Below are positions 1 through 13,995 of a stretch of 64,000 bases of DNA, one piece after another (the first letter of the stretch is position 1; every line of letters begins with the position of its first letter). The DNA lies in the sequence record OP617745.1, one strand, 5' to 3'. Under the pieces are notes generated by a model. That model had not been told where the DNA came from. It worked only from the letters and a program-made list of their open reading frames with translations, and ran no database searches. Made by a program: the position numbers and the translations under genes.

Positions 1-218
1 GTTTTTGATTTAATTCTTTTATTTTTACCACGTTCAGGATGACCTTGTTTCATACTCAAAAATGAATTTGGCTTTATTAAAAATTCTCCATATTGTGGAT
101 CTATAATTATAATTTTAGTTCTATTATTAATATATACTGTTTTACTATAATCAAATTCCACATCTGTTCTTATTCTTTTTGCATCTATAATAAATTCTTC
201 TTGTGTTTTTCTACGCAT
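1..218 (-). CDS. N-terminal part of a repeat-containing (DUF723-like) putative homing endonuclease, truncated by the window edge
   Basis: Manual translation from ATG at 218: MRRKTQEEFIIDAKRIRTDVEFDYSKTVYINNRTKIIIIDPQYGEF...KQGHP, the same repeat as ORF 16860-17858; not in the ORF track. Confidence 0.7.
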   Translation of the reverse strand, partial: MRRKTQEEFIIDAKRIRTDVEFDYSKTVYINNRTKIIIIDPQYGEFLIKPNSFLSMKQGHPERGKNKRIKSK

Positions 219-273
219 TATTATAATCTCTTTGTCAATATATAAAAATATTTAGTTATGATGGTTTTTGTGC

Positions 274-302
274 TTGACAATTTTTTTTATATAAGTTATT
301 AT
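274..302 (+). promoter_or_regulatory. sigma70 promoter
   Basis: TTGACA-17nt-TATTAT upstream of the AAA+ ATPase. Confidence 0.75.
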
Positions 303-331
303 GTTGTTATTGAATGAAGAGGTGATTGAAA

Positions 332-1102
332 ATGCATCCACGCCTAGAAAAAGCACAACAAATTCAAAAAAACTTCGATTCCATGATGAGTGCTTTGGAA
401 TGTCTTCTTGATTATAAATCAACTATTAACTCTCTTATTATTTGTGGTAAGGGTGGTTGTGGTAAAACATACAATGTAGAAAAGCGTCTCAAAGAAGCTC
501 ATGACCGTGCTGAAATTAACTTCACTTCTATTAGTGGTAAAGTTAGTACTATGGGTTTGTATGAAACATTATATAAAACTCGTAATAGTACTGATGTATT
601 AGTACTTGATGATGTTGATGTATTCAATTCAGAAGCAAATTTTGATCTATTAAAAGCAATCCTTGATACTTCTGATGAACGTGTTGTATCATATGCTACA
701 ACAAATAAACATCTAAAAAATAATGGCATTCCAATGTCTTTTGACTATCGAGGTAAAGTCATATTCATCACAAATAAAGATTTGTCAAAAATGGCAAAAT
801 CTAATACAAAATTAGCACCACATGTTGATGCATTACTAACTCGTTCTATTTTTGTTGATCTTCAAATTTTTAGCAATGAAGAAGTTATGATTCATATTGA
901 GAATATTATGCTCAGTACTAATATTCTCAAAAATTATGGTATTAATCAAAGTGGTTCAACTCAAATTATGAATTGGATGTTGAAACATGAATCAAAATTA
1001 CGTTCTCCATCATTACGTATGCCAGTACTGATAGCATCATTGTATAATAAATTCCCATATGATTGGGAAGAACGATGTGAAAACTTATTCCTGGAGAAAT
1101 AA
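332..1102 (+). CDS. AAA+ family P-loop ATPase
   Basis: Walker A GKGGCGKT, Walker B VLVLDDVD, sensor-1-like GKVIFITN; SD GAGGTG favours ATG at 332. Confidence 0.85.
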   Translation: MHPRLEKAQQIQKNFDSMMSALECLLDYKSTINSLIICGKGGCGKTYNVEKRLKEAHDRAEINFTSISGKVSTMGLYETLYKTRNSTDVLVLDDVDVFNSEANFDLLKAILDTSDERVVSYATTNKHLKNNGIPMSFDYRGKVIFITNKDLSKMAKSNTKLAPHVDALLTRSIFVDLQIFSNEEVMIHIENIMLSTNILKNYGINQSGSTQIMNWMLKHESKLRSPSLRMPVLIASLYNKFPYDWEERCENLFLEK

Positions 1103-1416
1103 TGAAATACAAATGTACAGTGTATAAAGAAGGTATTGTATTCATAGAAGTCTATGTAGATGATGATATTTGGTTTGAAGTTGATGAATGTTTTGATACA
1201 AATGTATACGTATCAAAAAATGGATATATCTATGAATATAATTTAAATCACGATTTTGGTTCAATGCAAGATGATGAACTATTTCAAATGAGTACTGTAA
1301 TTTCTATTCCTTTTGATTTAAAAATCATTAGAGAAGCCCATAAACAATTCAGTACTATTATAAAAGAAAATTCATCATTATTGTATCATTATATATTAGT
1401 AACAGAGGACGAATAA
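1102..1416 (+). CDS. hypothetical protein, FQxS-motif family
   Basis: QDDELFQMSTV; coupled to the ATPase stop codon. Confidence 0.75.
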   Translation: MKYKCTVYKEGIVFIEVYVDDDIWFEVDECFDTNVYVSKNGYIYEYNLNHDFGSMQDDELFQMSTVISIPFDLKIIREAHKQFSTIIKENSSLLYHYILVTEDE

Positions 1417-1544
1417 TGAAACCAGAACAATGGATCATCGATGATATGCGTGCTATGCGTAAGATTGAAAATAAATCATACGAAGAACAAGCATACTTAG
1501 ATCTTCTTCAATGGTATGTTAAAGTAATCCAATCAAAGGAATAA
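1416..1544 (+). CDS. small hypothetical protein (42 aa)
   Basis: Manual ORF MKPEQWIIDD..., coupled to upstream stop, SD GAGGA. Confidence 0.55.
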   Translation: MKPEQWIIDDMRAMRKIENKSYEEQAYLDLLQWYVKVIQSKE

Positions 1545-1546
1545 TT

Positions 1547-1894
1547 ATGTTAGACTTTATGCTAAAAAGTGAACTATCTCATACTATTGGATATAGTATT
1601 GCAGTACTGATCGTATTCAGCTTTTTGTTTGAAAAAATCAATTGGCTATTCAAAACCAATATCTATAAAAAGTATTATAAAGTTAAAAGTTTTGACAGAC
1701 AAATCTTTTTGGGTATAATGTATACATTAACATTATACTGTAGTATATTCGAAGTTGGATTTGTACTGGCTGATTCACCATTAACATTATATCTTTCATT
1801 GTATACACTTTTTCTTATACCATTTTCTTTGTATATTTTTTGTACTAAAATGTTCAATAAAATTATTGAATTCCGAAATAAATTACCGGACTGA
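1547..1894 (+). CDS. small multi-TM membrane protein, paralog of 1910-2257
   Basis: About 3 hydrophobic segments; KINWLFKTNIYKKYY...NKLPD. Confidence 0.8.
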   Translation: MLDFMLKSELSHTIGYSIAVLIVFSFLFEKINWLFKTNIYKKYYKVKSFDRQIFLGIMYTLTLYCSIFEVGFVLADSPLTLYLSLYTLFLIPFSLYIFCTKMFNKIIEFRNKLPD

Positions 1895-1909
1895 TATGGA
1901 GTAATATAA

Positions 1910-2257
1910 ATGATTGAGTTTATATTCAAAAGTGATTTCGCATATAGTGTTGGGTATTGTATCTTTATTGCTATTATTTTTAATTACTTATTTGAGAAAA
2001 TTAATTATTTTTTTAAGACTAATATTCACAAAAAGTATTATACAAACAAGAGCAGTAAAAGAAAAAACATTGAATTCACTCTGTATATTAGTACTATATA
2101 TCTGGTAACAATTGAACTTCCTTCAGTACTAACTGATAAAAATGTAACAATGCTATTTTGTGTATATAGTGTAGTGATTATCTTCTTTTGGGTATATTAT
2201 ACAGTCAAAGCATTGAATCAAAAATTAACTGAATTCCATAATAAACTACCGGATTAA
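1910..2257 (+). CDS. small multi-TM membrane protein, paralog of 1547-1894
   Basis: KINYFFKTNIHKKYY...NKLPD. Confidence 0.8.
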   Translation: MIEFIFKSDFAYSVGYCIFIAIIFNYLFEKINYFFKTNIHKKYYTNKSSKRKNIEFTLYISTIYLVTIELPSVLTDKNVTMLFCVYSVVIIFFWVYYTVKALNQKLTEFHNKLPD

Positions 2258-2263
2258 TTAAAA

Positions 2264-2608
2264 ATGAATGAATTTCTACGAAGTGAACTATTGTGTTCAG
2301 TACTACAATGCTTTTTGTTGTTATTCATTGTGTACCATTTGTATATTTTAGTACTATGGTACTTTAAACGTAAATCGTATTTGACATTATGGAAAAACAA
2401 TAAGTTAGCAGTTCCATTTCTTACTACTACAACAATAGCTTATGCTCTTTCCGGGATTTTCCTGTTTCCGGTGGATGATCCTGTAATGCAAGAAAGTGGG
2501 ATAGCAATTGCTAATCTTATTAGATCATTGTTCATTAGTGCATGGTTTTTCTTTGTATTAATCAGGTACTTAGTGCGTTTACGTACTAAAATCGAAGGGG
2601 CATTCTAA
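2264..2608 (+). CDS. small multi-TM membrane protein
   Basis: Hydrophobic segments, tandem array. Confidence 0.75.
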   Translation: MNEFLRSELLCSVLQCFLLLFIVYHLYILVLWYFKRKSYLTLWKNNKLAVPFLTTTTIAYALSGIFLFPVDDPVMQESGIAIANLIRSLFISAWFFFVLIRYLVRLRTKIEGAF

Positions 2609-2609
2609 A

Positions 2610-2945
2610 ATGCTGGAGTACATTAATCTGTTTGATACATCATTTGTTATAGTTAGTACTTATTATATTTGTAGTACTATATTCTACTTTCTGATGTGGT
2701 TCTTTAAACGTAAACTGGATAACTTCATTAAGCAATATTCGTTACAACTGGCATTACAATTGTATTACTGGATTGGATTTGGTTTAATGTATTTGCATTA
2801 CTATTTTGTATTATATAATATCCGTGAAAATAATACATTTATGCTTTATATGCTACAAATTATCGGTACTACAATCTATGTAGGTTATCTAATGTCGATT
2901 GTACTGTCAAAATTAAGAAACAAAATCCCTGATATGAGGAATTAA
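2610..2945 (+). CDS. small multi-TM membrane protein
   Basis: Hydrophobic; C-terminal RNKIPD resembles the first two paralogs. Confidence 0.75.
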   Translation: MLEYINLFDTSFVIVSTYYICSTIFYFLMWFFKRKLDNFIKQYSLQLALQLYYWIGFGLMYLHYYFVLYNIRENNTFMLYMLQIIGTTIYVGYLMSIVLSKLRNKIPDMRN

Positions 2946-2948
2946 AAA

Positions 2949-3254
2949 ATGACATATATTTTTATTGCATTAGCAATGTATTACTGGATTTCGTGGACTG
3001 GATATCTCTTTGCATTAAAATCTTTTGATTATTTCAGTGCTTCCTGCAAAGAAAGTTGGGGATGGCATGTAATGGCAACTTCGTCAGTAACATACTGTGC
3101 TTATGAAAGCATCACTGATAAGACATTCAATGATATTGTATTGAGTACAGTACTGATGTATTTGTGGAGTTTTGCATTTATTGTTCATATTTCACCTTTA
3201 ATTAGAGATAAAATTGTAAAATTTCACAATAAACAAAAGGAAAAGCGTACATGA
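2949..3254 (+). CDS. small multi-TM membrane protein
   Basis: Hydrophobic; basic tail KFHNK. Confidence 0.75.
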   Translation: MTYIFIALAMYYWISWTGYLFALKSFDYFSASCKESWGWHVMATSSVTYCAYESITDKTFNDIVLSTVLMYLWSFAFIVHISPLIRDKIVKFHNKQKEKRT

Positions 3255-3604
3255 TCATTACATTAAATTTACTGACATTTTTTAGTGTATTAACGTGTTT
3301 AATCTTTATTGGAAAATTCTTTTGTGTTAAAATAGCAGAAAAGATTTATGATTCATGGGAAAACGAAATGTCTTTATGGGTTCCTATATTCTGGACTGTT
3401 AGTAATGTATTTTTAATTCCAGCCTGGATTGGTGCAACAAAGGAAATCTTCCCGCTTTTTTTATTCAGTGCAATGTTCAGTGCTGGTTTTTGTTTTATGT
3501 ATATGGCATTTGAATTGATTGTTGTACTAAATGCTGTATTAGTACCTGCATTAAAGAATGTGCATGTAAAAATTAAACTCAAGAAATCACAGGGCAAATT
3601 ATGA
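3251..3604 (+). CDS. small multi-TM membrane protein
   Basis: Hydrophobic, ATGA overlap. Confidence 0.75.
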   Translation: MIITLNLLTFFSVLTCLIFIGKFFCVKIAEKIYDSWENEMSLWVPIFWTVSNVFLIPAWIGATKEIFPLFLFSAMFSAGFCFMYMAFELIVVLNAVLVPALKNVHVKIKLKKSQGKL

Positions 3605-3990
3605 CTTACAGAGATTATTTTTGTATATTCGAAGTACTGGTTTTCACTTCAGGTAGTTTAGTATTGTTATTGCATTATTTTTGTGTTGAGCCTTTTTACA
3701 AATTATTAAAACCAAAAACCGAAATGGGTGTATTTTGTTTATTTCAGTTTTTGTATTACTATTTTCTGTCTATTCTTTCTGTTGTTGTAGAAGTAATTTT
3801 TGGAGGATTTGTTAATGCAGACAAAATGCCGTCATACGAGTTGTTTACAATCTTCAATGTAATTATGATTGCTTTAATTGTGTTCGTATCAATCCTTGCT
3901 GGAATTTACAAATTTTTTGTATTCCTTGGTAACAAACACAATGATATAGTACTAAAACGAAAAGGAACACTGACAGATGAACGTAATTGA
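3601..3990 (+). CDS. small multi-TM membrane protein
   Basis: Hydrophobic, ATGA overlap. Confidence 0.75.
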   Translation: MTYRDYFCIFEVLVFTSGSLVLLLHYFCVEPFYKLLKPKTEMGVFCLFQFLYYYFLSILSVVVEVIFGGFVNADKMPSYELFTIFNVIMIALIVFVSILAGIYKFFVFLGNKHNDIVLKRKGTLTDERN

Positions 3991-4330
3991 AATAATTGTA
4001 GTTGTGTACCACATTTTAGCAGTACTTCTTATTTTATCTGTTCTCGTGGATTATGCATTAGGATTTGATAAACTTAAATTTATCTATCAGTACTTTGATG
4101 ATAATTTCGACAGTGATAATCCAGTACACGTATTTCTTGGATTAGAATTTATGTGCTTAATTCTTGTACTGTTTATTCCCATTATCGGTACTGGAACATC
4201 TCTTTTCTTCATTACTGCAATTACATTATTGTACTTCGTAGTAATAGTTCTTATTTTAGTACTATATTCTGTTGCATATGGAATAGAAAAAATTAGAAAT
4301 AAACGCCTAACAAAAAAAAATAAAAAATAG
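3977..4330 (+). CDS. small multi-TM membrane protein
   Basis: Hydrophobic, basic C-terminal tail. Confidence 0.75.
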   Translation: MNVIEIIVVVYHILAVLLILSVLVDYALGFDKLKFIYQYFDDNFDSDNPVHVFLGLEFMCLILVLFIPIIGTGTSLFFITAITLLYFVVIVLILVLYSVAYGIEKIRNKRLTKKNKK

Positions 4331-4396
4331 TTCCTGAACTTGACAATGCGGGATTTTTTTATATATAATAACATAATAAAATAATAGAGGCACAAA

Positions 4397-4984
4397 ATGA
4401 AACGCATAACTCGCAGCAAAAATGTGATCAGGGATAGATTTCGCAAGGTAAACATTATTAAGTACAGTACTATTGCATTAGCATTAAGTACTACATTTGT
4501 ACTCACTGCATGTGATGAACCAACAAATGTAGACGTATACAAATCATTAGAACAATGCAAAACTTCTGGAAAAAATCCAGCACAATGCGAAGAAGATTAC
4601 AAAAATGCACTAAAGCAAAGTGTCAGTACTGCACCGCATTATAAATCACAAAGCGAATGCTACGCAGACTTTGATACAGTATGCCAGGAAGGTCATTACA
4701 GTACTGGTGGTATGTTCTTCTATCCTATGATGACAGGATTCCATAGTTCAGGACAAGGATATCATTCACAACCTTTATATAGTCATAAAGGTAATTACGT
4801 TGATGCTGGTGGAAATAATTACGGATCAACTTACAGTACCACTACTAACAGAACTGTACCAAGATCCGGTCTAACACAAAAAGCACCAACCAGTACTATA
4901 ACCAGAAGTGGATTTGGTAGTACTGTTTCAAGTCGTAGCTTTTCAAGTTCTCATAGTTCATCAAGCCATTCATTTGGTGGTTAA
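4397..4984 (+). CDS. ygiB: DUF1190/YgiB-like lipoprotein
   Basis: Lipobox LTAC; VYKSLEQC...QC...APHYKSQSECYADF...C...FYPMMTGF...SQPLY...TITRSGFG and Ser-rich tail, typical of DUF1190. Confidence 0.8.
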   Translation: MKRITRSKNVIRDRFRKVNIIKYSTIALALSTTFVLTACDEPTNVDVYKSLEQCKTSGKNPAQCEEDYKNALKQSVSTAPHYKSQSECYADFDTVCQEGHYSTGGMFFYPMMTGFHSSGQGYHSQPLYSHKGNYVDAGGNNYGSTYSTTTNRTVPRSGLTQKAPTSTITRSGFGSTVSSRSFSSSHSSSSHSFGG

Positions 4985-5001
4985 ACAATAAAGGAAAATA
5001 A

Positions 5002-5634
5002 ATGAAATATTCAAGCCTGAATCTTTATAATAATCCAGCAGTCGCTACTCATGCAATCACTGGTAGTATCAATGATTCTTCTTATAAAGAATTCCGTGAG
5101 TTCATCAAGGCAGTACTGGAAAATAATCAGAAAATCTCCGACGAAGAACGTATCCATAAAGAGAAAGAAGAATTCAATAAAATTCATAATCCAGAAGCTA
5201 AACCAGAATTCTTTAGCCCTAAAACTAAAGTACAACGTATTAATCTTATCGTAGATTCATATGGCGGTCAATGTTCTTCTATGACCAGTATTGTTGCACT
5301 AATGAATAGTTCTCCTATTCCTATTGATACATATTGCTTCGGTGCTGCCATGTCAGCAGGATTTATGATTTTTATTCATGGAAAAAATCGTTATGTAGGT
5401 AATGCAGCAGACCTTATGATGCATAGTTTAAGTACTGGTGTATATGATCACGCACCTGGTATTAAATCAAAAGCCGAACACCTGCTGAAAATTAATACAG
5501 TCTATCAACAAATGGTAGCAAATAAAACTGGTCTTACAATGGAATGGCTTAAAGAGCACGAAGAAAATGATATGCACTTCCTTGCAGATGATTGTATTGA
5601 ATACAAAATTGCAGATGCAATCATTGAGGAATAA
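5002..5634 (+). CDS. clpP: ClpP-like serine protease
   Basis: INLIVDSYGG, AAMSAG (catalytic Ser), LMMH (His), ENDMHFLADDCIEYKIADAI (Asp region). Confidence 0.85.
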   Translation: MKYSSLNLYNNPAVATHAITGSINDSSYKEFREFIKAVLENNQKISDEERIHKEKEEFNKIHNPEAKPEFFSPKTKVQRINLIVDSYGGQCSSMTSIVALMNSSPIPIDTYCFGAAMSAGFMIFIHGKNRYVGNAADLMMHSLSTGVYDHAPGIKSKAEHLLKINTVYQQMVANKTGLTMEWLKEHEENDMHFLADDCIEYKIADAIIEE

Positions 5635-5637
5635 TAT

Positions 5638-5838
5638 ATGACAATATTATTCAGTACCGAAGATCCATTTGGTAATAACAGTTCAGTACTTAAAAATCTT
5701 AATAACCATCTGAATAGAAAAACAAACGGATCATGGGGAAGTGATAAACATTCCCGTAAACTATTTCCACGTGGAAAAACTTATGACCGATTATTTGATA
5801 TTCACTTAGACACATATATGGAAAAAAACTTTATTTAA
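5638..5838 (+). CDS. hypothetical protein
   Basis: ORF track, operonic. Confidence 0.6.
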   Translation: MTILFSTEDPFGNNSSVLKNLNNHLNRKTNGSWGSDKHSRKLFPRGKTYDRLFDIHLDTYMEKNFI

Positions 5839-5841
5839 AAT

Positions 5842-5878
5842 AAAAGGGTTGACTTCGGTCAGCCTTTTTTGTTATTAT
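5842..5878 (+). terminator. intrinsic terminator with an embedded sigma70 promoter
   Basis: AAAAGGGTTGAC-TTCG-GTCAGCCTTTTTT; TTGACT in the stem, TATTAT downstream. Confidence 0.75.
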
Positions 5879-5908
5879 AACAGTACTATCTCAAAGAGGT
5901 AATTAATA

Positions 5909-6517
5909 ATGAAAAAAGTCAAAAAATTATACAAAGATTGGTACAACAAAATTAAACAACAACATTTAACAGAAAAACGCAACCCGCAATCTACTTATGT
6001 GTTTAGATGGACTTTCAAATCCTCTGATAGTATGAAAAAGATTAAACCGGGTGCTACATTTAAAATTGCTAAAGTACTAAAAATATTTCTCAGAGCTAAT
6101 AATATCCATCTCAATGAAGTAGGGTGGAATAATAGAGGGAAAATTACTTGTACTAATAAAATTAAATCAGCTACCTTTGATGTATATATTAAAGATATTC
6201 CGTGCTCAATTTTTGTATCCGAAAAAACAAAAGGAATTCTAATAATCATTGATTATCATAAACATAAAAAAATTTATACATTAGAAAAAAATCTCATTGC
6301 ATATAATTCATATTACGATATCTTTCTTCAGGGTCGTCAAATACTTGAAGAATTAAACATTGATTATAATAACTTAACAGAAGAAGAAATGTTTCAACTA
6401 AGTACTATATTCGATGTGTATTTCTATAAAACCGTCAAAAATATAGGAATAGAATTACACAATACCAAAAACCTAAACTGTAATAAACTCGTAGCAGTAC
6501 TAAACAAATACAAATAA
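5909..6517 (+). CDS. hypothetical protein, FQxS-motif family
   Basis: TEEEMFQLSTI; SD GAGGT. Confidence 0.8.
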   Translation: MKKVKKLYKDWYNKIKQQHLTEKRNPQSTYVFRWTFKSSDSMKKIKPGATFKIAKVLKIFLRANNIHLNEVGWNNRGKITCTNKIKSATFDVYIKDIPCSIFVSEKTKGILIIIDYHKHKKIYTLEKNLIAYNSYYDIFLQGRQILEELNIDYNNLTEEEMFQLSTIFDVYFYKTVKNIGIELHNTKNLNCNKLVAVLNKYK

Positions 6518-6522
6518 AACCA

Positions 6523-6861
6523 ATGAAGGATTTAAGTAAAATGATCATCCAAATCAATAGCTATAAAACAAAAGAAGAACTGACCACCCTTATTATTAAA
6601 GCTATTCAAAAAGGGGAAAGTTATATCAAAATTCCATTAGATAAAACAAACAATCGTAATATGGTTATTTCTCAAATTGATAAAGATTTTAATATCAATC
6701 TATGTTATATGGAAGAAACCAGTACTGATATCATTTACTCAGGTACTGAATCATTTAAACCATACCAAATCATTACAGCAGTGTATAATTGCGTCCAACG
6801 TTATTTCAGTACTGAACCAAATAAAACAATAAGAGAACAACAAAAAATATACAAGAAGTAG
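6523..6861 (+). CDS. hypothetical protein
   Basis: ORF track. Confidence 0.7.
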   Translation: MKDLSKMIIQINSYKTKEELTTLIIKAIQKGESYIKIPLDKTNNRNMVISQIDKDFNINLCYMEETSTDIIYSGTESFKPYQIITAVYNCVQRYFSTEPNKTIREQQKIYKK

Positions 6862-6890
6862 AAAAACATAGCAAAAACTTCCCCGGTGGT

Positions 6891-7085
6891 ATGACCGTCA
6901 AAGAATTAAAAGAATTAATTAAAGATTGGCCTGAAACCAATCAGTACGGAGAAGATACTTTAGTCTATATCAGTACTGAATCAGATACGGATTGTACTGT
7001 ACATTCTTCGTGGTGTTCATCAGTAAGAACTAATGATAATGGTACACTTGTGTATGACTTGACTCTTGATACAGAACAAAGATAA
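6891..7085 (+). CDS. hypothetical protein
   Basis: ORF track. Confidence 0.65.
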   Translation: MTVKELKELIKDWPETNQYGEDTLVYISTESDTDCTVHSSWCSSVRTNDNGTLVYDLTLDTEQR

Positions 7086-7087
7086 TT

Positions 7088-7135
7088 AAAAAGACTCCCC
7101 GTAAAACTCGATCAAACGGATTCTACGGGGAGTAT
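7088..7135. terminator. hairpin closing the left gene block (U-tract on the minus strand)
   Basis: ACTCCCCGTA...TACGGGGAGT stem preceded by AAAAG. Confidence 0.55.
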
Positions 7136-7240
7136 ACTATATTGGACGATATGGTCATTATAGTAGACAATTTAATGGATATAGGTGATTGTATGTGAGT
7201 AAGAATAGTATAGTACTAATAATAATGAGTAGGAATTGAT

Positions 7241-7300
7241 AAGAATGATTCAGTACTATTAAGAATGATTAAGTACTATTCAGTACTATTCAGTACTGAT
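7241..7300. repeat. tandem 10-bp-register repeat rich in AGTACT
   Basis: aagaatgatt cagtactatt aagaatgatt aagtactatt cagtactatt cagtactgat. Confidence 0.8.
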
Positions 7301-7579
7301 ATGCCACTAAGTCCGTTTATAAAGTCGCACCCAGTGGGCTACATTTGTAACTATTCAGTACTGAATAATTCAATGCATATATTATTTCAGTACTTAATCA
7401 TTAGCAAACTATTAATTTCAATATCTCCTTTAGATAATATTTCGTATCTTATATTAACAAAAATCTGAATAGCATGTCAAGAAAAATCTGGATTACCAAC
7501 GAGAAAAAATCTGGATTTTAAAAATTTTGAAATGTCGTTTATAGTTCAGGAAAAAAATGAAATTATAACAAGAAAATTG

Positions 7580-7608
7580 TTGACATGGATATGCTGCCAT
7601 TATATAAT
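7580..7608 (+). promoter_or_regulatory. consensus sigma70 promoter with no downstream ORF
   Basis: TTGACA-17nt-TATAAT. Confidence 0.8.
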
Positions 7609-7614
7609 GTAATC

Positions 7615-8080
7615 CTCAAGACGAGAGAATGTTCTCTCACAGAAAATGCGAAGAAGCCGAGTTTATCTGTCCCTGCGTGAGTGGGCTAACATTTGAATAG
7701 GACAATACGTAGATGAATGAAAAAGGTTTAAAGGGAAGTATTTGATTCCCTGTAGTATAGTTAATGAGTTAGTACTGATTTAGATGTAATCATTGAGTAG
7801 TACTACTGTCGCAAAGGGAAACCTTTGGCTTCCATGGGGAGTGATGACAGAAGGGCATTATCCTCCATATAGAGTTACTGCGAATAACTCCGTAAGTTGG
7901 GTTGTGGCAAACCTCCTAAAATAGTGAATCTACAGTACTACTGCTTGATGGATTTGTTACCCGTAGGTAGTACTGCTTTTAATTTAAAGAATACCCTCCG
8001 CCAAGAAAGGTGCATGTAACTTGAACATGTGAACTACGGGAACAGTACTGAATAATTCAGTACTGATTCCTCTCCAAATT
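7615..8080 (+). ncRNA. candidate large structured non-coding RNA
   Basis: Follows a perfect promoter; no ORF over about 25 aa seen; multiple hairpins; GC-richer than flanks. Confidence 0.4.
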
Positions 8081-8114
8081 TTGGATACAATAATGCTAGG
8101 CTTCAGTTAGTACT

Positions 8115-8232
8115 GAGTGAGAATGATAATGATTCTCATTTGAATTGGATGAGAACGATTCTCATTTACAGTTGCAAATGATAATAGATTGCATTTACGA
8201 ATGGTTCTCATTCGCAGATGATAATGATTCTT
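8115..8232. promoter_or_regulatory. array of about 5 Fur-box-like sites
   Basis: GAGAATGATAATGATTCTC at 8119-8137 (16/19 to GATAATGATAATCATTATC), TGAGAACGATTCTCA at 8150-8164, and further AATGATAAT units. Confidence 0.7.
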
Positions 8233-8376
8233 GAATTTTTTCCATTAGCTAGACTACCCCGTAGGATATATAATATCCTGGAGTATCTGCTTAATTTTTC
8301 AAAATCTGGATTAATAATATCAGTACTATCCAGGATATGCAATACCCAAAACAAAAATAAATTCTAAAAAAATCTA

Positions 8377-8405
8377 TTGACATAATATTCCAGTACTGTC
8401 ATAAT
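8377..8405 (+). promoter_or_regulatory. sigma70 promoter, left arm of a 33-bp inverted repeat
   Basis: TTGACA-17-CATAAT. Confidence 0.8.
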
Positions 8406-8411
8406 ATAAGC

Positions 8412-8459
8412 AAGTCAGAAAAATGACGTTTGCCCACAGGGTGCGGAGGAACATCTATT
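8412..8459 (+). ncRNA. two-hairpin RNA motif copy
   Basis: GTCA-GAAAAA-TGAC then GCCC-ACA-GGGT GCGGAGGAACATCTATT. Confidence 0.55.
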
Positions 8460-8463
8460 AAAT

Positions 8464-8482
8464 GAGAATGATAATCATTTAC
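8464..8482. promoter_or_regulatory. Fur box at the centre of the convergent cassette
   Basis: GAGAATGATAATCATTTAC, 16/19 to consensus. Confidence 0.7.
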
Positions 8483-8489
8483 AATATTG

Positions 8490-8533
8490 AATAGATTTCC
8501 GCACCCTGTGGGTTAAGGAATTTCGCTTCCATG
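8490..8533 (-). ncRNA. two-hairpin RNA motif copy
   Basis: Reverse complement: GGAA-GCGAAA-TTCC, ACCC-ACA-GGGT GCGGAAATCTATT. Confidence 0.55.
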
Positions 8534-8539
8534 TAAAAC

Positions 8540-8567
8540 ATTATACAGTACTGGAATATTATGTCAA
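8540..8567 (-). promoter_or_regulatory. sigma70 promoter, right arm of the inverted repeat
   Basis: Reverse complement TTGACA-16-TATAAT. Confidence 0.8.
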
Positions 8568-8632
8568 TAGATTTTTTATCTGAACAAATTATTTTTTTGT
8601 TATATAATTACATATAAAAAAGGATTAAATTT

Positions 8633-9160
8633 ATGGTATGGAAAACACTTAAAGAAAATGATTTATATGAAATAGATGAATATGGAAATATTAGAAATAA
8701 ATCAACTATGCTAATAAGGAAAACTTCATTAAATGAGAATGGATATAAACAAATTATATTATCGTACAAAGGGAAAATATCTACTTATAAAATACATAGA
8801 TTAGTAGCAAATAATTTCCTTGCTCCACCAACAAAAGAGCAATTAGAATGGGCTAAAACTACAAAATATAAAGTTGTTCAAGTAAATCATAAGGATGGAA
8901 ACAAATTAAACAATCATAAAGACAATTTAGAATGGAATACTAATAGTGAAAACATGATTCATTCTTTTAAAAATCTTAATAGATTTAGACCAGGAAAAGG
9001 AAGTTCAAATATTAATAGTAAGCTTACAAAAGAAAATGAAAAATTTATATTGACTAATTATAAAAAGCGTGATAAGAAATATGGATTAGAAGCATTGGCG
9101 AGACAATTTAATGTTAGTGCAACAACTATTGCAAGATGCATTAATAATAATAAAAAATAA
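8633..9160 (+). CDS. NUMOD4/HNH homing endonuclease
   Basis: WKTLKENDLYEIDEYGNIRN (NUMOD4); HRLVANNFL...VNHKDGNKLNNHKDNLEW (HNH). Confidence 0.9.
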   Translation: MVWKTLKENDLYEIDEYGNIRNKSTMLIRKTSLNENGYKQIILSYKGKISTYKIHRLVANNFLAPPTKEQLEWAKTTKYKVVQVNHKDGNKLNNHKDNLEWNTNSENMIHSFKNLNRFRPGKGSSNINSKLTKENEKFILTNYKKRDKKYGLEALARQFNVSATTIARCINNNKK

Positions 9161-9163
9161 TAT

Positions 9164-9192
9164 TTGACAAGATTATTCAGTACTGCTATTAT
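9164..9192 (+). promoter_or_regulatory. early sigma70 promoter, representative of more than 25 similar promoters in 9-27 kb
   Basis: TTGACA-agattattcAGTACTGc-TATTAT. Confidence 0.85.
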
Positions 9193-9213
9193 ATATTCAT
9201 ACCAAACAGCAAA

Positions 9214-9233
9214 GGGAATCAGTACTGATTCCC
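9214..9233. repeat. 20-bp palindrome GGGAATCAGTACTGATTCCC used as a leader hairpin (copies at 10124, 10539, 16649, 18974; variants at 9727, 14597, 20238)
   Basis: Direct sequence comparison; lies between promoter and AAGGAG SD in all copies except 9727. Confidence 0.9.
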
Positions 9234-9250
9234 TGTAAAGGAGAACTACC

Positions 9251-9421
9251 ATGAAATACGCATACTCTTATTTTATTGTAAACGGTGAACGTTTGACCAT
9301 CGGCCAGGCTGCTGTAAAACATGAAATCATTTGCGATGAGCTGGCGAAGATGCTACCAGGTGAAACGCAAGAGTTTTACAAAGGCTTTCAGAAAGTCACT
9401 GTAACACGCTGCGAAGATTGA
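9251..9421 (+). CDS. small early protein (56 aa)
   Basis: Manual ORF with its own promoter and AAGGAG SD. Confidence 0.75.
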   Translation: MKYAYSYFIVNGERLTIGQAAVKHEIICDELAKMLPGETQEFYKGFQKVTVTRCED

Positions 9422-9486
9422 TCCAGTACTGGGGCAGCAATGCCCCTTTAAACGTCCTGTAACGCATTGTAAGAGGTTTTTATAAT

Positions 9487-9714
9487 ATGGCTATAGAAGT
9501 TAACGCTGGGGATATAAAGGCGGCTGTACTGCGTACCCTGAAAGCATACGGCAGAAAGCTGAATGATCGCAACGTTCCCTATTATTTCCTTGCTGCTACT
9601 CATAAAATGGCAATCGCTGAGGCTCGCGGCTGGCTGAATGATCGCAGTACTGTAAAGAGTACCAGAACAAGAAACGCAATTGAGCGATGGATAAAAGAAT
9701 TAAATCATTTCTAA
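9487..9714 (+). CDS. hypothetical early protein
   Basis: ORF track. Confidence 0.75.
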   Translation: MAIEVNAGDIKAAVLRTLKAYGRKLNDRNVPYYFLAATHKMAIAEARGWLNDRSTVKSTRTRNAIERWIKELNHF

Positions 9715-9787
9715 TAGTTCAGTTAAGGGATTCAGTACTGATTCCCTGTTCAGTACTGAAATTATAAGGGGAGTTAATTAATTCCCC

Positions 9788-9802
9788 TTTACAAATCTTT
9801 AC
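9788..9802. promoter_or_regulatory. CpxR-like box (TTTAC-N5-TTTAC)
   Basis: Reverse complement GTAAAGATTTGTAAA, 10 nt upstream of the -35 at 9813. Confidence 0.55.
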
Positions 9803-9812
9803 AAAAGAATGG

Positions 9813-9895
9813 TTGACATAGTATTTCAGTACTGGTATTATGTATTCATAGACAGAACAAGTCTTTGACCCACCGGGTGCGGAGGAGTATCTATT
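9813..9895 (+). ncRNA. promoter plus two-hairpin RNA motif copy
   Basis: TTGACA-17-TATTAT; AGAC-AGAACAA-GTCT; ACCC-ACC-GGGT GCGGAGGAGTATCTATT. Confidence 0.55.
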
Positions 9896-9904
9896 AGATT
9901 GAAT

Positions 9905-9923
9905 GAGAATGATAATGATTCTC
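9905..9923. promoter_or_regulatory. Fur box
   Basis: GAGAATGATAATGATTCTC, identical to 8119-8137. Confidence 0.7.
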
Positions 9924-10161
9924 ATTTACTGTACTGAATATATTCCAGCACCCTTTTTGGGCTTTTCGATTTCTCTCTACTTGTTAATAAGTATACCATA
10001 ATCAGTACTGAATGCAATGCTCTTTACAAATCTTTACAAAAGAAAATAATTATAAAAAGTACTGAAAAAGTATTTGACGTAATAATGTAGTACTGGCATA
10101 ATACATCCATACCAAACAACAAAGGGAATCAGTACTGATTCCCTGTTAAGGAGTAACTAAA

Positions 10162-10449
10162 ATGTTTAATGCTAATGATCATATTGTTAAAGAGTTTTCT
10201 TTCAGTAAGCCGGTGCATTTAGAAAACGGTGAAACGCTGGACAATAAATTTTATGGTAGTATTATTAAGCGTTATACATCGCGTAGCAGTACTGGAATTT
10301 TGTGGGAAGTGAATAAACAGTACAATGGTAATTCGCTGGTTGTCAATGAGTGGGAAAGTTATGCAGTAGCTGAAATGGATTTTTCTAACTTCATTACTGA
10401 ATCTTTGAACGATGATATTTTTTACAAGTTCACAGCGGAAAGGGTTTAA
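10162..10449 (+). CDS. hypothetical early protein
   Basis: Own promoter, leader palindrome, SD. Confidence 0.8.
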   Translation: MFNANDHIVKEFSFSKPVHLENGETLDNKFYGSIIKRYTSRSSTGILWEVNKQYNGNSLVVNEWESYAVAEMDFSNFITESLNDDIFYKFTAERV

Positions 10450-10576
10450 AAAGTTTTAAAGAGTATTTGACAACATAAACCAGTACTGTATAATGTATTG
10501 CATAGGGCGGCACAAGTCGCCCACAACTAACCAGCAAAGGGAATCAGTACTGATTCCCTGTTAAGGAGTAATTACT

Positions 10577-11188
10577 ATGAATGTTATCGATACTATCTAT
10601 TCTAAATCTTTTGATGAATTGGATTCAGTACAGAAGAAAAAAGCAATTGATATTATGCGGGATCTGGAACGCCACGATTCAGATCCATTCTGGGCACAAT
10701 TAATTAATGAAGATAAACGCGAATTAATGAATAATGAATATGGTTTTACTGATACTGTAATTCATTATAGCGGCTTTTGCTCACAAGGTGACGGGGCGTC
10801 AATTAGTACTGAATCAATCGCCGCCGAGACGTTTTTACGCAAAATTAAAGCATGGTCGAAATTCCGTGTATTGCATAAACATTTCAATGATGGTACAATT
10901 ACATTAAAGATCGAACGCAACGATCATCGTTATTCTCATGAAAATACTGTTTCTGGTGTGGTGGATCTGGACTACGGCACTGAATTCACTGCTAAACAGG
11001 AAGAGAAAGCGGACGAACTGGAAACGCTTTTGACTGAAACTATCCGCGATCTTTCTCGCCAGCATTATCAGGTTCTGAGCGATGAAAACGATTATCAAAA
11101 TAGTGATGAAGCATTGATTGAATCGATTAATGCAAATGATTATAATTTCAAAGTTAATAGTACTGGCGACGTGTTAGGACTTGCATAA
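10577..11188 (+). CDS. conserved phage protein of unknown function (SGFxSQGDGA motif)
   Basis: HYSGFCSQGDGAS and C-terminal SDEALIESINANDYNF, recalled as a recurrent phage family. Confidence 0.75.
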   Translation: MNVIDTIYSKSFDELDSVQKKKAIDIMRDLERHDSDPFWAQLINEDKRELMNNEYGFTDTVIHYSGFCSQGDGASISTESIAAETFLRKIKAWSKFRVLHKHFNDGTITLKIERNDHRYSHENTVSGVVDLDYGTEFTAKQEEKADELETLLTETIRDLSRQHYQVLSDENDYQNSDEALIESINANDYNFKVNSTGDVLGLA

Positions 11189-11278
11189 TGACCAAATTAT
11201 ATATTCGTTTCTGTTTTGCCTGGTACTTGTATAATCTGCAAAATGGTTATACAGTGAAATAATGAACTGATATACTGT

Positions 11279-11373
11279 AAAACGTCCTGTAAACGATTAT
11301 GGGACGTTTTAAGGAATATTGGTACAATGGTTAGTACTGAATGATTTAAACGCCTTACAATCGCTTACAGGGG
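11279..11373. repeat. bipartite AAAACGTCCTGTAA... element (near-identical 40 nt at 19499; relatives at 9449, 13064, 14341, 15449, 23762, 27200)
   Basis: aaaacgtcctgtaa(a/t)cgattatgggacgttttaaggaata, 39/40 identical. Confidence 0.75.
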
Positions 11374-11382
11374 ATTATATCA

Positions 11383-11613
11383 ATGACTATTATCGCAAAA
11401 TCCAAAATCAACAATACTACAGTAAAACTTGTACAATTGAAAAACTGTTTTAAAGTTTCCTATTGTGGTTTTAAGCGTGAATTTAGTACTATCGAAAAGG
11501 CGGCAGAACATTACAGCAGTACTGTAAAATCTTTTGTTGATAATGATTCTCGTAACCTTGTTAGTGATTATAATCGTTTTAATTCAATTCAGGAACAATT
11601 AAAAGATCTGTAA
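11383..11613 (+). CDS. hypothetical early protein
   Basis: ORF track. Confidence 0.75.
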   Translation: MTIIAKSKINNTTVKLVQLKNCFKVSYCGFKREFSTIEKAAEHYSSTVKSFVDNDSRNLVSDYNRFNSIQEQLKDL

Positions 11614-11678
11614 AAAGTACTTGCTTTAATCTTTCAGTACTGTTATAATAACTACATCAACCACAAAGGAGTAACCAA

Positions 11679-11993
11679 ATGAGTACTAAAGAACTGAATG
11701 TAACTACCAACACTTATAAGACGTTAGGCGGTCGGTTGTTACGTGATTATTACGCGATTGAGATCGAAGAACGCGAATTACCCGAAGATAAACACTATTG
11801 GGAAAGTGGTGTGAGTCCTCTGTTACGGGTAACAACGTCAAAGCATGTTTTCTTTACTTCCCGCATTCATGTTAATAAGCGTGTTGAATTGACTTTCTCT
11901 TTCAGTGGTAGTTATAAAGATCATGAGATCTTGAATGATCGTATCGTTATTAATAAATTTATTCAAATGTATGGTGTAGATTCTTTCGCATAA
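11679..11993 (+). CDS. hypothetical early protein
   Basis: Own promoter, AAGGAG SD. Confidence 0.8.
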   Translation: MSTKELNVTTNTYKTLGGRLLRDYYAIEIEERELPEDKHYWESGVSPLLRVTTSKHVFFTSRIHVNKRVELTFSFSGSYKDHEILNDRIVINKFIQMYGVDSFA

Positions 11994-12056
11994 GTATTTG
12001 ACAATGCGATCCAGTACTGTATAATGTATTTCATCGAATAGATAGGAGTACTTACC

Positions 12057-13494: not shown

Positions 13495-13995
13495 ATGGCT
13501 AAACTTAACTCTGTGATCGTTGCTCTGCTGGCTGGTGATTTCGCTGCTCTGAATACTTCTTTCGCGTCGGTATCGATGGAAGATATGAAAACTGTCCGCA
13601 ATAACTTTAACGACTTTTATTCCAAATTTAAAGCGGCAAATGAAGCGGCGGAAGCGGCTGCAAAAGAGCGTAAAGCACAGATCGAAACCGAAACTAAAGC
13701 CCTGGTAGATGCCCTGGTAACTGCTGGCCTGGATCTGGAAATGGCCGCCGAAGTCGCCAGCCAGAAAATGGCGGTGAAATATCCCGAGCTGGTCGCGAAG
13801 TCGGGAACTGGTAAAACCTGGTCGTTTGAAACGGTATTCGTTAACGTTGACGGTGAAAAACTGGAAATTGGCACCAAAGGCAACAAAGGCAGTATGAAAG
13901 CACTGGCTGCGGCACGCGAAGCAATTGCCGCCGGGCAGTACAAAGATCGTGCTGAATGGATCGCCGCTCACACCTGGACTGAAACCGAAGCGTAA
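13495..13995 (+). CDS. highly expressed early protein, tentatively H-NS-like
   Basis: SD GAGGA before ATG 13495; host-optimal codons; coiled coil then ALVDALVTAGLDLE, similar to the H-NS oligomerisation region. Confidence 0.5.
   Translation: MAKLNSVIVALLAGDFAALNTSFASVSMEDMKTVRNNFNDFYSKFKAANEAAEAAAKERKAQIETETKALVDALVTAGLDLEMAAEVASQKMAVKYPELVAKSGTGKTWSFETVFVNVDGEKLEIGTKGNKGSMKALAAAREAIAAGQYKDRAEWIAAHTWTETEA

Follow-up and report, generated by a model that had tools for sequence, protein, structure and literature searches.

A gene-less array of Fur-box-like palindromes in the leader of Klebsiella jumbo phage KP13-7, with counterparts in T5-like and other enterobacterial phages

Introduction

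Among the closest described systems to the locus considered here are the repeats in the injection stop region of phage T5, which have been catalogued since 1987, their function having been called 'impossible to guess' and the host protein responsible 'unsolved'. Davison's comparison of 25 T5-like phages (2020 preprint), from which the words 'Fur' and 'iron' are absent, lists these repeats, stresses their extreme conservation and proposes DnaA, and a 2023 paper on BF23 points out that experimental work on the repeat sites is lacking. No paper in the T5 literature examined calls these repeats Fur boxes, and literature searches for Fur boxes in connection with phage T5, or for Fur sites in the genomes of lytic phages, brought up no relevant paper; the Fur-box reading of these phage repeats is new within the literature searched. 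The main added value of the present analysis is the link between phage families, above all to the T5 injection stop region.

A second point of reference is offered by the Fur operators of bacteria. In classical Fur repression, the boxes overlap the -35/-10 elements. The Fur clusters of bacterial iron-uptake genes, such as those of chuT-chuA and of the genes for TonB-dependent receptors, carry the same 19-bp/7-1-7 motif as the array of Klebsiella phage KP13-7 described below, including its GAGAAT-arm variant, and they also consist of several sites side by side that overlap at a 6-bp offset. However, the bacterial clusters overlap the promoter of the repressed gene, whereas the KP13-7 array overlaps no promoter and precedes no gene. 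Clusters of Fur sites with 3- or 6-bp spacing are among the arrangements described in PMC2189734. Finally, the titration of Fur by multicopy Fur boxes is the principle of FURTA (PMC3423075), which has in common with the phage array that an extra-chromosomal replicating DNA carries Fur boxes without an attached gene. FURTA is, on the other hand, a laboratory artefact of high-copy plasmids, whereas the phage boxes are few, fixed in position and set in a promoter-rich control region, which argues for a local role.

The array and its genomic setting

The window analysed here is a stretch of 64,000 nucleotides (70% A+T) corresponding to bases 124001-188000 of record OP617745.1. Its 3-kb stretch around the array is 100% identical to Klebsiella phage KP13-7 (OP617745.1, 357.7 kb), a member of the genus Alcyoneusvirus of RaK2-like jumbo myoviruses, and the aligned parts are 93-97% identical to RaK2, K64-1, Muenster, RCIP0023, phiKp_21 and one further assembly. 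Sequence, consensus scanning, geometry, conservation and cross-family similarity define a Fur-box-like array of five palindromic units at 8118-8233, which bears out an earlier note on this DNA that had reported about five closely spaced Fur-like sites. The first unit, U1 (8118-8138), has a 7-7-7 form, with TGAGAAT and ATTCTCA arms around a 7-nt centre, equivalent to two 7-1-7 sites overlapping by 6; it is followed by U2 (8150-8164), a 7-1-7 palindrome reading TGAGAAC-G-ATTCTCA, U3 (8173-8193), a weaker 7-7-7 form, U4 (8196-8210), a degenerate 7-1-7, and U5 (8219-8233), a 7-1-7 whose left arm is perfect and whose right arm is weak. The strings quoted in the earlier note are where it had placed them: the 19-mer GAGAATGATAATGATTCTC, with 16/19 positions of the Fur consensus (three mismatches), occurs at 8119-8137 and again at 9905-9923, the U2 palindrome is at 8150-8164, and the consensus string it had given is the one used in the literature. 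The second occurrence of the 19-mer belongs to a copy of U1 that is identical over 24 nt (9904-9927).

Scans of the whole 64-kb window gave four matches to the 19-bp Fur consensus with up to three mismatches, against 0.21 expected, and all of them fall within 8119-9929. For the 7-1-7 core, nine sites were found at up to two mismatches (2.9 expected), four of the nine lying at 8124-9910, and two at up to one mismatch (0.25 expected), while occurrences of GATTCTCATTT with 0-1 mismatch are confined to 8131-9927 and those with two mismatches are at background level. The mismatches to the 7-1-7 core amount to one for the site at 8124, three for those at 8118, 8150 and 8219, and four for that at 8179. 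Consensus matching alone leaves only U1 as a strong site within the array, with U2 and U5 at three mismatches and U3 at four. Taken overall, strong consensus matches are limited to U1, a box at 8463 and the copy at 9904, U3 and U4 being weak. Weak box matches are common throughout this AT-rich DNA; at up to four mismatches the 7-1-7 cluster does not exceed chance (five observed against a simulated mean of 4.5 and maximum of 8), and outside the leader the box density stays at background across the window. The spacing of the units is irregular, at 20-32 bp, with unit centres 20-29 bp from one another, and Tandem Repeats Finder reported no tandem array at 8118-8233.

The array is nonetheless real and more than a product of chance, because its palindromic repeat structure is accompanied by near-invariance in seven phages and by a likeness to arrays of other phage families. 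In the alignment of seven Alcyoneusvirus genomes, positions 8091-8232 are almost invariant, with around five variable columns, whereas the ~70 bp that follow (8233-8300) diverge and contain an 18-bp indel. Among the Muenster copies, GAGAAT and GATAAT hexamers are exchanged, and a change in RCIP0023 shifts a box toward the consensus; the variation from copy to copy remains within the Fur pattern.

The record of phage Muenster is linear, and its first 20,030 bp constitute a terminal repeat according to a PhageTerm prediction. Base 1 of Muenster aligns to window position 7310 and the end of its repeat (20030) maps between 27374 and 28758, so that by homology the KP13-7 array would lie 805-920 bp inside the left boundary of a direct terminal repeat of ~20 kb, whose first 270 bp would be those at 7310-7579 (+ strand). 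Placement of the leader within this repeat implies two leader copies per genome. On the outer side of the boundary there are tandem ATTCAGTACT-type repeats (7240-7299; period 10/20 and 3-5 copies by Tandem Repeats Finder). Predicted promoters of sigma-70 type whose spacer carries CAGTACTG number at least 26 in the repeat; they point rightward, lie between 8377 and 29542 and each precede small genes, which gives the picture of an early region read by host polymerase. Ten early ORFs compared with Pfam yielded an HNH endonuclease, a DUF7300 protein and a sub-threshold match to an H-NS N-terminal domain, and none of the ten is a Fur-like or HTH protein.

A gene-less stretch of 1.5 kb surrounds the array, with no annotated CDS between 7086 and 8632 and only short TTG-started frames in the ORF list. 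Upstream of the array, and pointing at it, there is a predicted sigma-70 promoter with perfect TTGACA-17 nt-TATAAT elements (7580-7608, + strand), which is conserved in seven phages and is without the AGTACT spacer motif that marks the other early promoters. Just past its predicted transcription start lies a 16-bp palindrome, GAGAGAATGTTCTCTC (7623-7638), that is present in all seven genomes and whose arms resemble those of the array. From 7614 to 8114 (+ strand) extends a well-conserved non-coding leader; credible ORFs are absent from it, the predicted 7580 promoter probably drives its transcription, and it is a candidate structured RNA (fold z = -3.2 against shuffled controls); no + strand terminator was found between this promoter and the array. 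The earlier note had held that no promoter-gene unit is under the direct control of the sites. This stands insofar as neither strand has a promoter-like site overlapping 8115-8232, those closest to it being at 7580-7608 and 8377-8405, but the perfect promoter at 7580-7608 reads into the array. Rfam searches gave no match at gathering score across the window, the only match in 7000-10200 being at chance level (E ~1), and a tRNA search of the window found none; both kinds of search were also negative for the array regions of phages alia and CR8, which are described below.

Downstream of the array, the motif TTTTCAAAATCTGGAT (8296-8311, + strand) has related copies at ~7484 and ~7507, and is the exact 16-mer shared with the array regions of phages alia and J-01. 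It is followed by a nested palindrome of 211 bp (8367-8577), with outer arms of 33 nt that are 100% complementary and GC-rich inner arms of 15 nt (8433-8447 and 8498-8512). The outer arms correspond to two convergent sigma-70 promoters, on the + strand at 8377-8405 and on the - strand at 8567-8540, and a Fur-like box (8463-8483) occupies exactly the dyad of the palindrome, between the two. Adjoining this palindromic module is a KP13-7-specific insertion, an HNH_3/NUMOD4 homing endonuclease gene (8633-9160, + strand). A second box module (9813-9960) begins with an AGTACT-type early promoter (9813-9841, + strand) reading into it, and holds the 24-nt U1 copy ~65-85 nt downstream of that promoter, within an imperfect GC-rich inverted repeat. 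Modules related to the hairpin-box one occur three times each in Muenster, RaK2 and K64-1, and also in the Erwinia jumbo phage Hallingskeid.

Similar arrays in other phages

A sensitive blastn search with the array alone matched 254 phage records, and an earlier search with more flanking sequence matched 158. Outside Alcyoneusvirus, the matches correspond to T5-like Demerecviridae, to the phi92-like Stephanstirmvirinae alia, J-01 and phi1_175008, to Certrevirus CR8 and to Hallingskeid, which at only ~65% identity retains the array, the hairpin-box module and the AGTACT promoters. Four phage lineages, namely the jumbo myovirus group, the T5-like siphoviruses, the phi92-like phages and Certrevirus, thus carry such arrays. 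In the more distantly related jumbo phage CBB, the first 9 kb of the repeat have no such box.

The matches in T5-like phages reach E-values of 1e-9 (KEY) and 3e-8 (NR01) in the left terminal repeat, and always map to a non-coding stretch near its inner end. In T5 itself, the counterpart (AY587007.1, 9468-9666) comprises the annotated direct repeat C copies 1-4 and palindromes E-J, and has the DnaA-box inverted repeats (9332-9462) on one side and the 7.9% nick (9661-9668) on the other; the estimated shear point is next to it, and ~500 bp separate it from the left terminal repeat's inner end. In AY692264.1, the array falls within a feature annotated as 'injection stop signal'. Repeat Region 3 of T5 and the KP13-7 array are alike in consisting of 5-6 units, of 7-1-7 or 7-7-7 form, whose arms are of TGAGAAT type, in being highly conserved within their family, and in their setting, an extensive untranslated part of a long direct terminal repeat less than 1 kb from a repeat boundary, which for KP13-7 is placed by homology. 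They differ in what accompanies the array: in T5 there are DnaA boxes in pairs within the IRD'/IRC' inverted repeats, as well as DRD repeats and a major nick, whereas neither DnaA boxes nor DRD repeats were found at the array of KP13-7: the DnaA box TTWTNCACA is absent between 7000 and 19000 (11 in the whole window against 15.6 expected), and the T5 DRD unit, at up to three mismatches, is absent near the array. Moreover, the T5 array follows the pre-early genes and occupies the inner end of the repeat, whereas that of KP13-7 precedes the early genes and is near the outer (left) end of the left copy.

Phages alia, J-01, phi1_175008 and CR8 have 3-5 boxes at up to two mismatches within ~100-130 bp of a gene-less region, where the annotation reads only 'repeat_region'. 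As in KP13-7, a sigma-70 promoter and a GC-rich hairpin lie ahead of the phi92-like and CR8 arrays. The phi92-like phages and Certrevirus belong to virus families different from that of KP13-7. Depending on the phage, the arrays are found in both orientations relative to nearby transcription. Apart from the 16-nt motif also present in alia and J-01, KP13-7 has DNA similarity to the T5-like, phi92-like and Certrevirus phages only in the array. A tblastx comparison of T5 bases 1-12000 with the whole window gave no matches, the DNA similarity there being limited to the array, and hence no shared binding protein was found in these regions. For unrelated enterobacterial phages that share only the array, a common host partner would be the simplest explanation.

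Resemblance to Fur operators

The best match of the array among E. coli genomes supports its interpretation as a set of Fur boxes. U1 is identical at 27 of 29 positions to a site 22 bp upstream of E. coli chuT, in the divergent chuT-chuA heme-uptake intergenic region. When the array was compared by blastn with 5,426 complete E. coli genomes, this chuT site accounted for the only two matches, in a search whose E-value limit, over 28 Gb, bars short matches. Furthermore, the exact 21-mer of U1 occurs at 45 bacterial genome loci, where well under one would be expected for a random 21-mer in ~1.2e12 positions. Most of these loci belong to SAR86 gammaproteobacteria and some to other phyla, and at five of the ten loci analysed with Pfam a TonB-dependent receptor ORF starts 28-227 bp from the box, most of the remaining flanking ORFs being also of ~700 aa.

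The geometry of the units points in the same direction. With arm-pair spacers of 0-12 allowed, 11 array regions of Alcyoneusvirus, Hallingskeid, T5-like, phi92-like and Certrevirus phages showed a spacer of 1 in 35 of 44 cases, of 7 in eight and of 0 in the remaining one, and spacers of 1 and 7 are those expected because overlapping Fur sites offset by 6 bp predict them. Together, the consensus match, the 7-1-7/offset-6 geometry, the 27/29 identity at chuT and the 45 loci with the 21-mer lend sequence support to the Fur-box identity proposed in the earlier note, and the units are well supported as putative Fur-type operators.

Possible roles of the array

The reading that we favour, tentatively and as plausible while still short of probable, is that the array is an operator cluster for host Fur in the early-region leader, acting in cis as a roadblock or insulator. 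We infer Fur binding, and with it each of the consequences that follow, from the features of the DNA. The cell would have metal-loaded Fur at hand as the DNA arrives, and this protein would cover the array together with the dyad boxes. By homology, the leader makes up the initial ~1.3 kb of the direct terminal repeat of ~20 kb, and the five units in it could seat about 5-7 Fur dimers side by side, with one or two more Fur sites in each downstream promoter/hairpin module. The resulting nucleoprotein block would bring RNA polymerase from the 7580-7608 promoter to a stop or a pause, and likewise the leftward polymerase from the convergent promoters at 8540-8567 and their equivalents, and read-through across the leader would thereby become dependent on the iron status of the cell. 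A role in cis is suggested because the strong boxes are in the leader only, downstream of promoters and not on them, because one box sits exactly on the dyad between convergent promoters, because the positions of the boxes relative to promoters, dyads and repeat boundary are conserved, and because the 7580 promoter, with no terminator on its way, has nothing else to run into. A host factor is preferred over a phage protein because the T5/window tblastx comparison was empty and the DNA likeness is that of the array only. Against a cis role it counts that no box covers a -35/-10 element, that early genes have their own promoters, so that the gain from a roadblock is not obvious, that only U1 and the boxes at 8463 and 9904 match strongly in DNA where weak matches abound, that CBB is boxless in the first 9 kb of its repeat and that the spacing of the units is irregular.

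The decoy in trans put forward in the earlier note would work differently, with replicating boxes soaking up Fur and derepressing iron uptake, TonB-dependent receptors and RyhB. In Klebsiella, such a decoy could affect capsule synthesis as well, and these phages, rich in depolymerases, use the capsule as their receptor layer. In terms of numbers a decoy is conceivable. The boxes do look like genuine Fur operators and the leader would be present twice per genome; in addition, capsule production in K. pneumoniae is under the control of Fur and RyhB (PMC3423075), multicopy boxes titrate Fur as in FURTA, and Fur can be limiting relative to its targets, as argued in 10.1101/2022.05.06.490408. However, each repeat copy would offer only ~8-11 dimer sites in a single control region, the rest of the 64 kb being at background, and where the boxes lie, and which way they face, with respect to promoters, dyads and repeat boundary is conserved, although a decoy could work from any position. 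The T5 array, for its part, is located in the first-step-transfer DNA, and the pre-early genes of this phage trigger the destruction of host DNA within minutes (10.64898/2026.04.02.716235), which leaves little room for derepression of host genes by such an array. No anatomical feature requires a decoy and nothing specific supports it, and the roadblock for the upstream transcript, which the earlier note had offered as its second option, fits the anatomy better; the decoy is one of several possibilities, an unlikely one and not the best fit. Somewhat unlikely is also that the units bind a protein other than Fur, either phage-encoded, virion-borne or another host factor, the likeness to Fur boxes being coincidental or a mimic. 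It would account for arms that are mostly TGAGAAT/ATTCTCA and not the consensus TGATAAT/ATTATCA, and for the extra conserved flanks (AA...TTT) and the ~29-35 bp repeat frame that recur in T5-like phages, CR8 and phi1_175008. The early region encodes many proteins of unknown function and the H-NS-like ORF with its sub-threshold match, and T5 gene A2 encodes a DNA-binding protein. But T5 pre-early DNA and the window have no protein likeness by tblastx, yet their arrays are alike, bacteria themselves use the TGAGAAT-arm 21-mer before TonB-dependent receptor genes and, with two changes, at chuT, and a spacing of 1 or 7 follows the rule for Fur sites.

The location of the T5 and KP13-7 arrays in terminal repeats raises the further prospect, which we regard as rather unlikely, of a DNA-handling signal, either a pause or stop for stepwise entry or a mark for end-cutting or duplication during packaging, in which Fur may or may not take part. 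It is suggested by T5, where the array is inside the annotated injection stop signal, by the 7.9% nick and the estimated shear point, and the 805-920 bp that would separate the KP13-7 array from its repeat boundary, by homology, are in keeping with it. However, KP13-7 lacks, near its array, the pairs of DnaA boxes and the DRD repeats seen in T5, the two arrays lie on opposite sides of the genes in question (downstream of pre-early genes in T5, upstream of early genes in KP13-7), and RaK2-like phages are not known to enter in two steps. An element working at the RNA level, with hairpins of the leader transcript serving its processing or stability, or pairing with those host mRNAs in which operators are transcribed, seems very improbable. 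The array is probably transcribed from the predicted 7580 promoter, U1 and U2 fold as hairpins and the upstream leader reaches z = -3.2 against shuffled sequences, but the fold of the array itself has a z of only -2.1, with 9/200 shuffles folding equally well, a 7-1-7 palindrome would leave a 1-nt loop that is unfavourable for RNA, and arrays occur in both orientations to transcription, that of T5 being beyond annotated terminators. The array has, finally, a superficial likeness to transcription-primed origins, such as oriF and oriG of T4, in that a strong promoter is followed by a gene-less, AT-rich repeat block, which might represent replication iterons and an unwinding element activated by the upstream promoter. 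We consider this highly improbable: the units are irregularly spaced inverted repeats and not direct iterons, DnaA boxes are absent between 7000 and 19000, as is an initiator gene next to the array, the neighbouring ORFs are without replication domains, and the T5 origins are reported near the centre of the genome and not in the region that bears the array.

Implications

Returning to the cis-acting block by host Fur, a wider version of it would make Fur the missing host factor for the incoming DNA end of several unrelated large lytic enterobacterial phages. The T5 array would then help to set the pause of first-step transfer, and in RaK2-like, phi92-like and Certrevirus phages Fur would likewise serve as a checkpoint that senses iron, either during genome entry or during the initial wave of transcription. 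This extension is a speculative one that we hold to be quite unlikely. In any case, if Fur really binds, strictly lytic phages from at least four lineages (the jumbo myovirus group, T5-like siphoviruses, phi92-like phages and Certrevirus) would independently carry gene-less arrays of the operators of a host global regulator, in the DNA that controls the earliest phase of infection. Infection would be tied to the iron status of the cell, a tie made notable because T5-like phages enter through TonB-dependent transporters, FhuA in the case of T5. The repeats of the T5 injection stop region would gain a concrete and checkable candidate, and an iron-dependent early control would bear on the use of therapy Klebsiella phages in iron-poor host tissue. 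With regard to viral sequences at large, a pattern scan of viral contigs, which says little about arrays, matched more than 120 of them, mostly through a single box, and arrays were found in only seven.

Sequence elements around the Fur-like arrays

The perfect sigma-70 promoter of the Klebsiella jumbo phage KP13-7 (window 7580-7608, plus strand), which reads toward the array of predicted Fur boxes, is followed on its 3′ side by a conserved, ORF-free leader (7614-8114) whose predicted fold is more stable than those of shuffled sequences (z = -3.2). This leader matched no Rfam family and is a candidate for an early-expressed non-coding RNA in the RaK2-like phages. Members of two different subfamilies, phage alia (Stephanstirmvirinae) and phage CR8 (Vequintavirinae), share a GC-rich segment of about 125 nt with 83% identity (positions 2233-2355 of the alia locus and 2254-2379 of the CR8 locus), located directly 3′ of a sigma-70 promoter and immediately 5′ of a Fur-like array. 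It also lacks any match in Rfam, and may possibly correspond to a shared small RNA.

A AAATCTGGAT-type motif flanks the promoter/array unit of KP13-7 on either side (7484-7518 and 8296-8311), and similar motifs adjoin the arrays of phi92-like phages, where they contain the exact 16-mer TTTTCAAAATCTGGAT (around 2680-2760 of the alia locus), and occur as two copies of ATCTGGAAT in the Erwinia jumbo phage Hallingskeid (around 2650-2685 of its locus). This motif looks like a second shared site. A promoter-adjoining array is present in an uncultivated viral contig from IMG/VR (around 1812-1900), where a 30-bp unit containing TGAGAATCATTCTCA is perfectly repeated three times in tandem, directly 5′ of a consensus sigma-70 promoter. 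Among bacterial loci (L134-L178), the exact 21-mer TGAGAATGATAATGATTCTCA recurs in many SAR86 genomes, both single-cell and metagenome-assembled, 5′ of genes for TonB-dependent receptors.

A further Fur-like box is carried by the dyad of a nested 211-bp palindrome (8367-8577), which is composed of two convergent consensus promoters and GC-rich inner arms, and directly adjoins a gene for an HNH homing endonuclease (8633-9160) that is specific to KP13-7. The convergent promoters form the 33-nt arms of the palindrome, which are 100% complementary, and this perfection suggests a recent inverted duplication.

Early promoters and the terminal-repeat boundary

The hexamer AGTACT occurs 276 times in the window (1-64000) against 21 expected, a 13-fold excess well beyond that of every other 6-bp palindrome, and reaches its highest density at 4000-28000. 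At least 26 rightward sigma-70-type promoters (8377-29542) carry CAGTACTG in the spacer, directly 5′ of the -10 element, and many hairpin loops, such as GGGAATCAGTACTGATTCCC, contain this sequence as well. The AGTACT motif is common to KP13-7 and Hallingskeid. Several early promoters of KP13-7 also show TTTACAAATCTTTACAAA directly 5′ of the -35 element (9787-9805, 10021-10040 and one further copy), while a TTTGTAAAGAnnTGTAAAGA sequence resembling its reverse complement is found 5′ of the array-preceding promoter in alia (around 2335) and CR8 (around 2355).

Tandem ATTCAGTACT / TAAGAATGATTCAGTACTAT repeats (7240-7299) end 10 bp short of position 7310, which corresponds to the left terminus of the predicted terminal repeat of the related phage Muenster. 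In Muenster itself, a similar TATTCTGTAC-type repeat lies immediately outside the right repeat boundary. Such boundary-adjoining repeats, on the left in KP13-7 and on the right in Muenster, could constitute an end-recognition feature. Finally, an early ORF (13495-13995) weakly resembles the H-NS N-terminal domain, with a Pfam match slightly under the cut-off, and its homologue in Muenster carries the annotation "putative DNA-binding protein".
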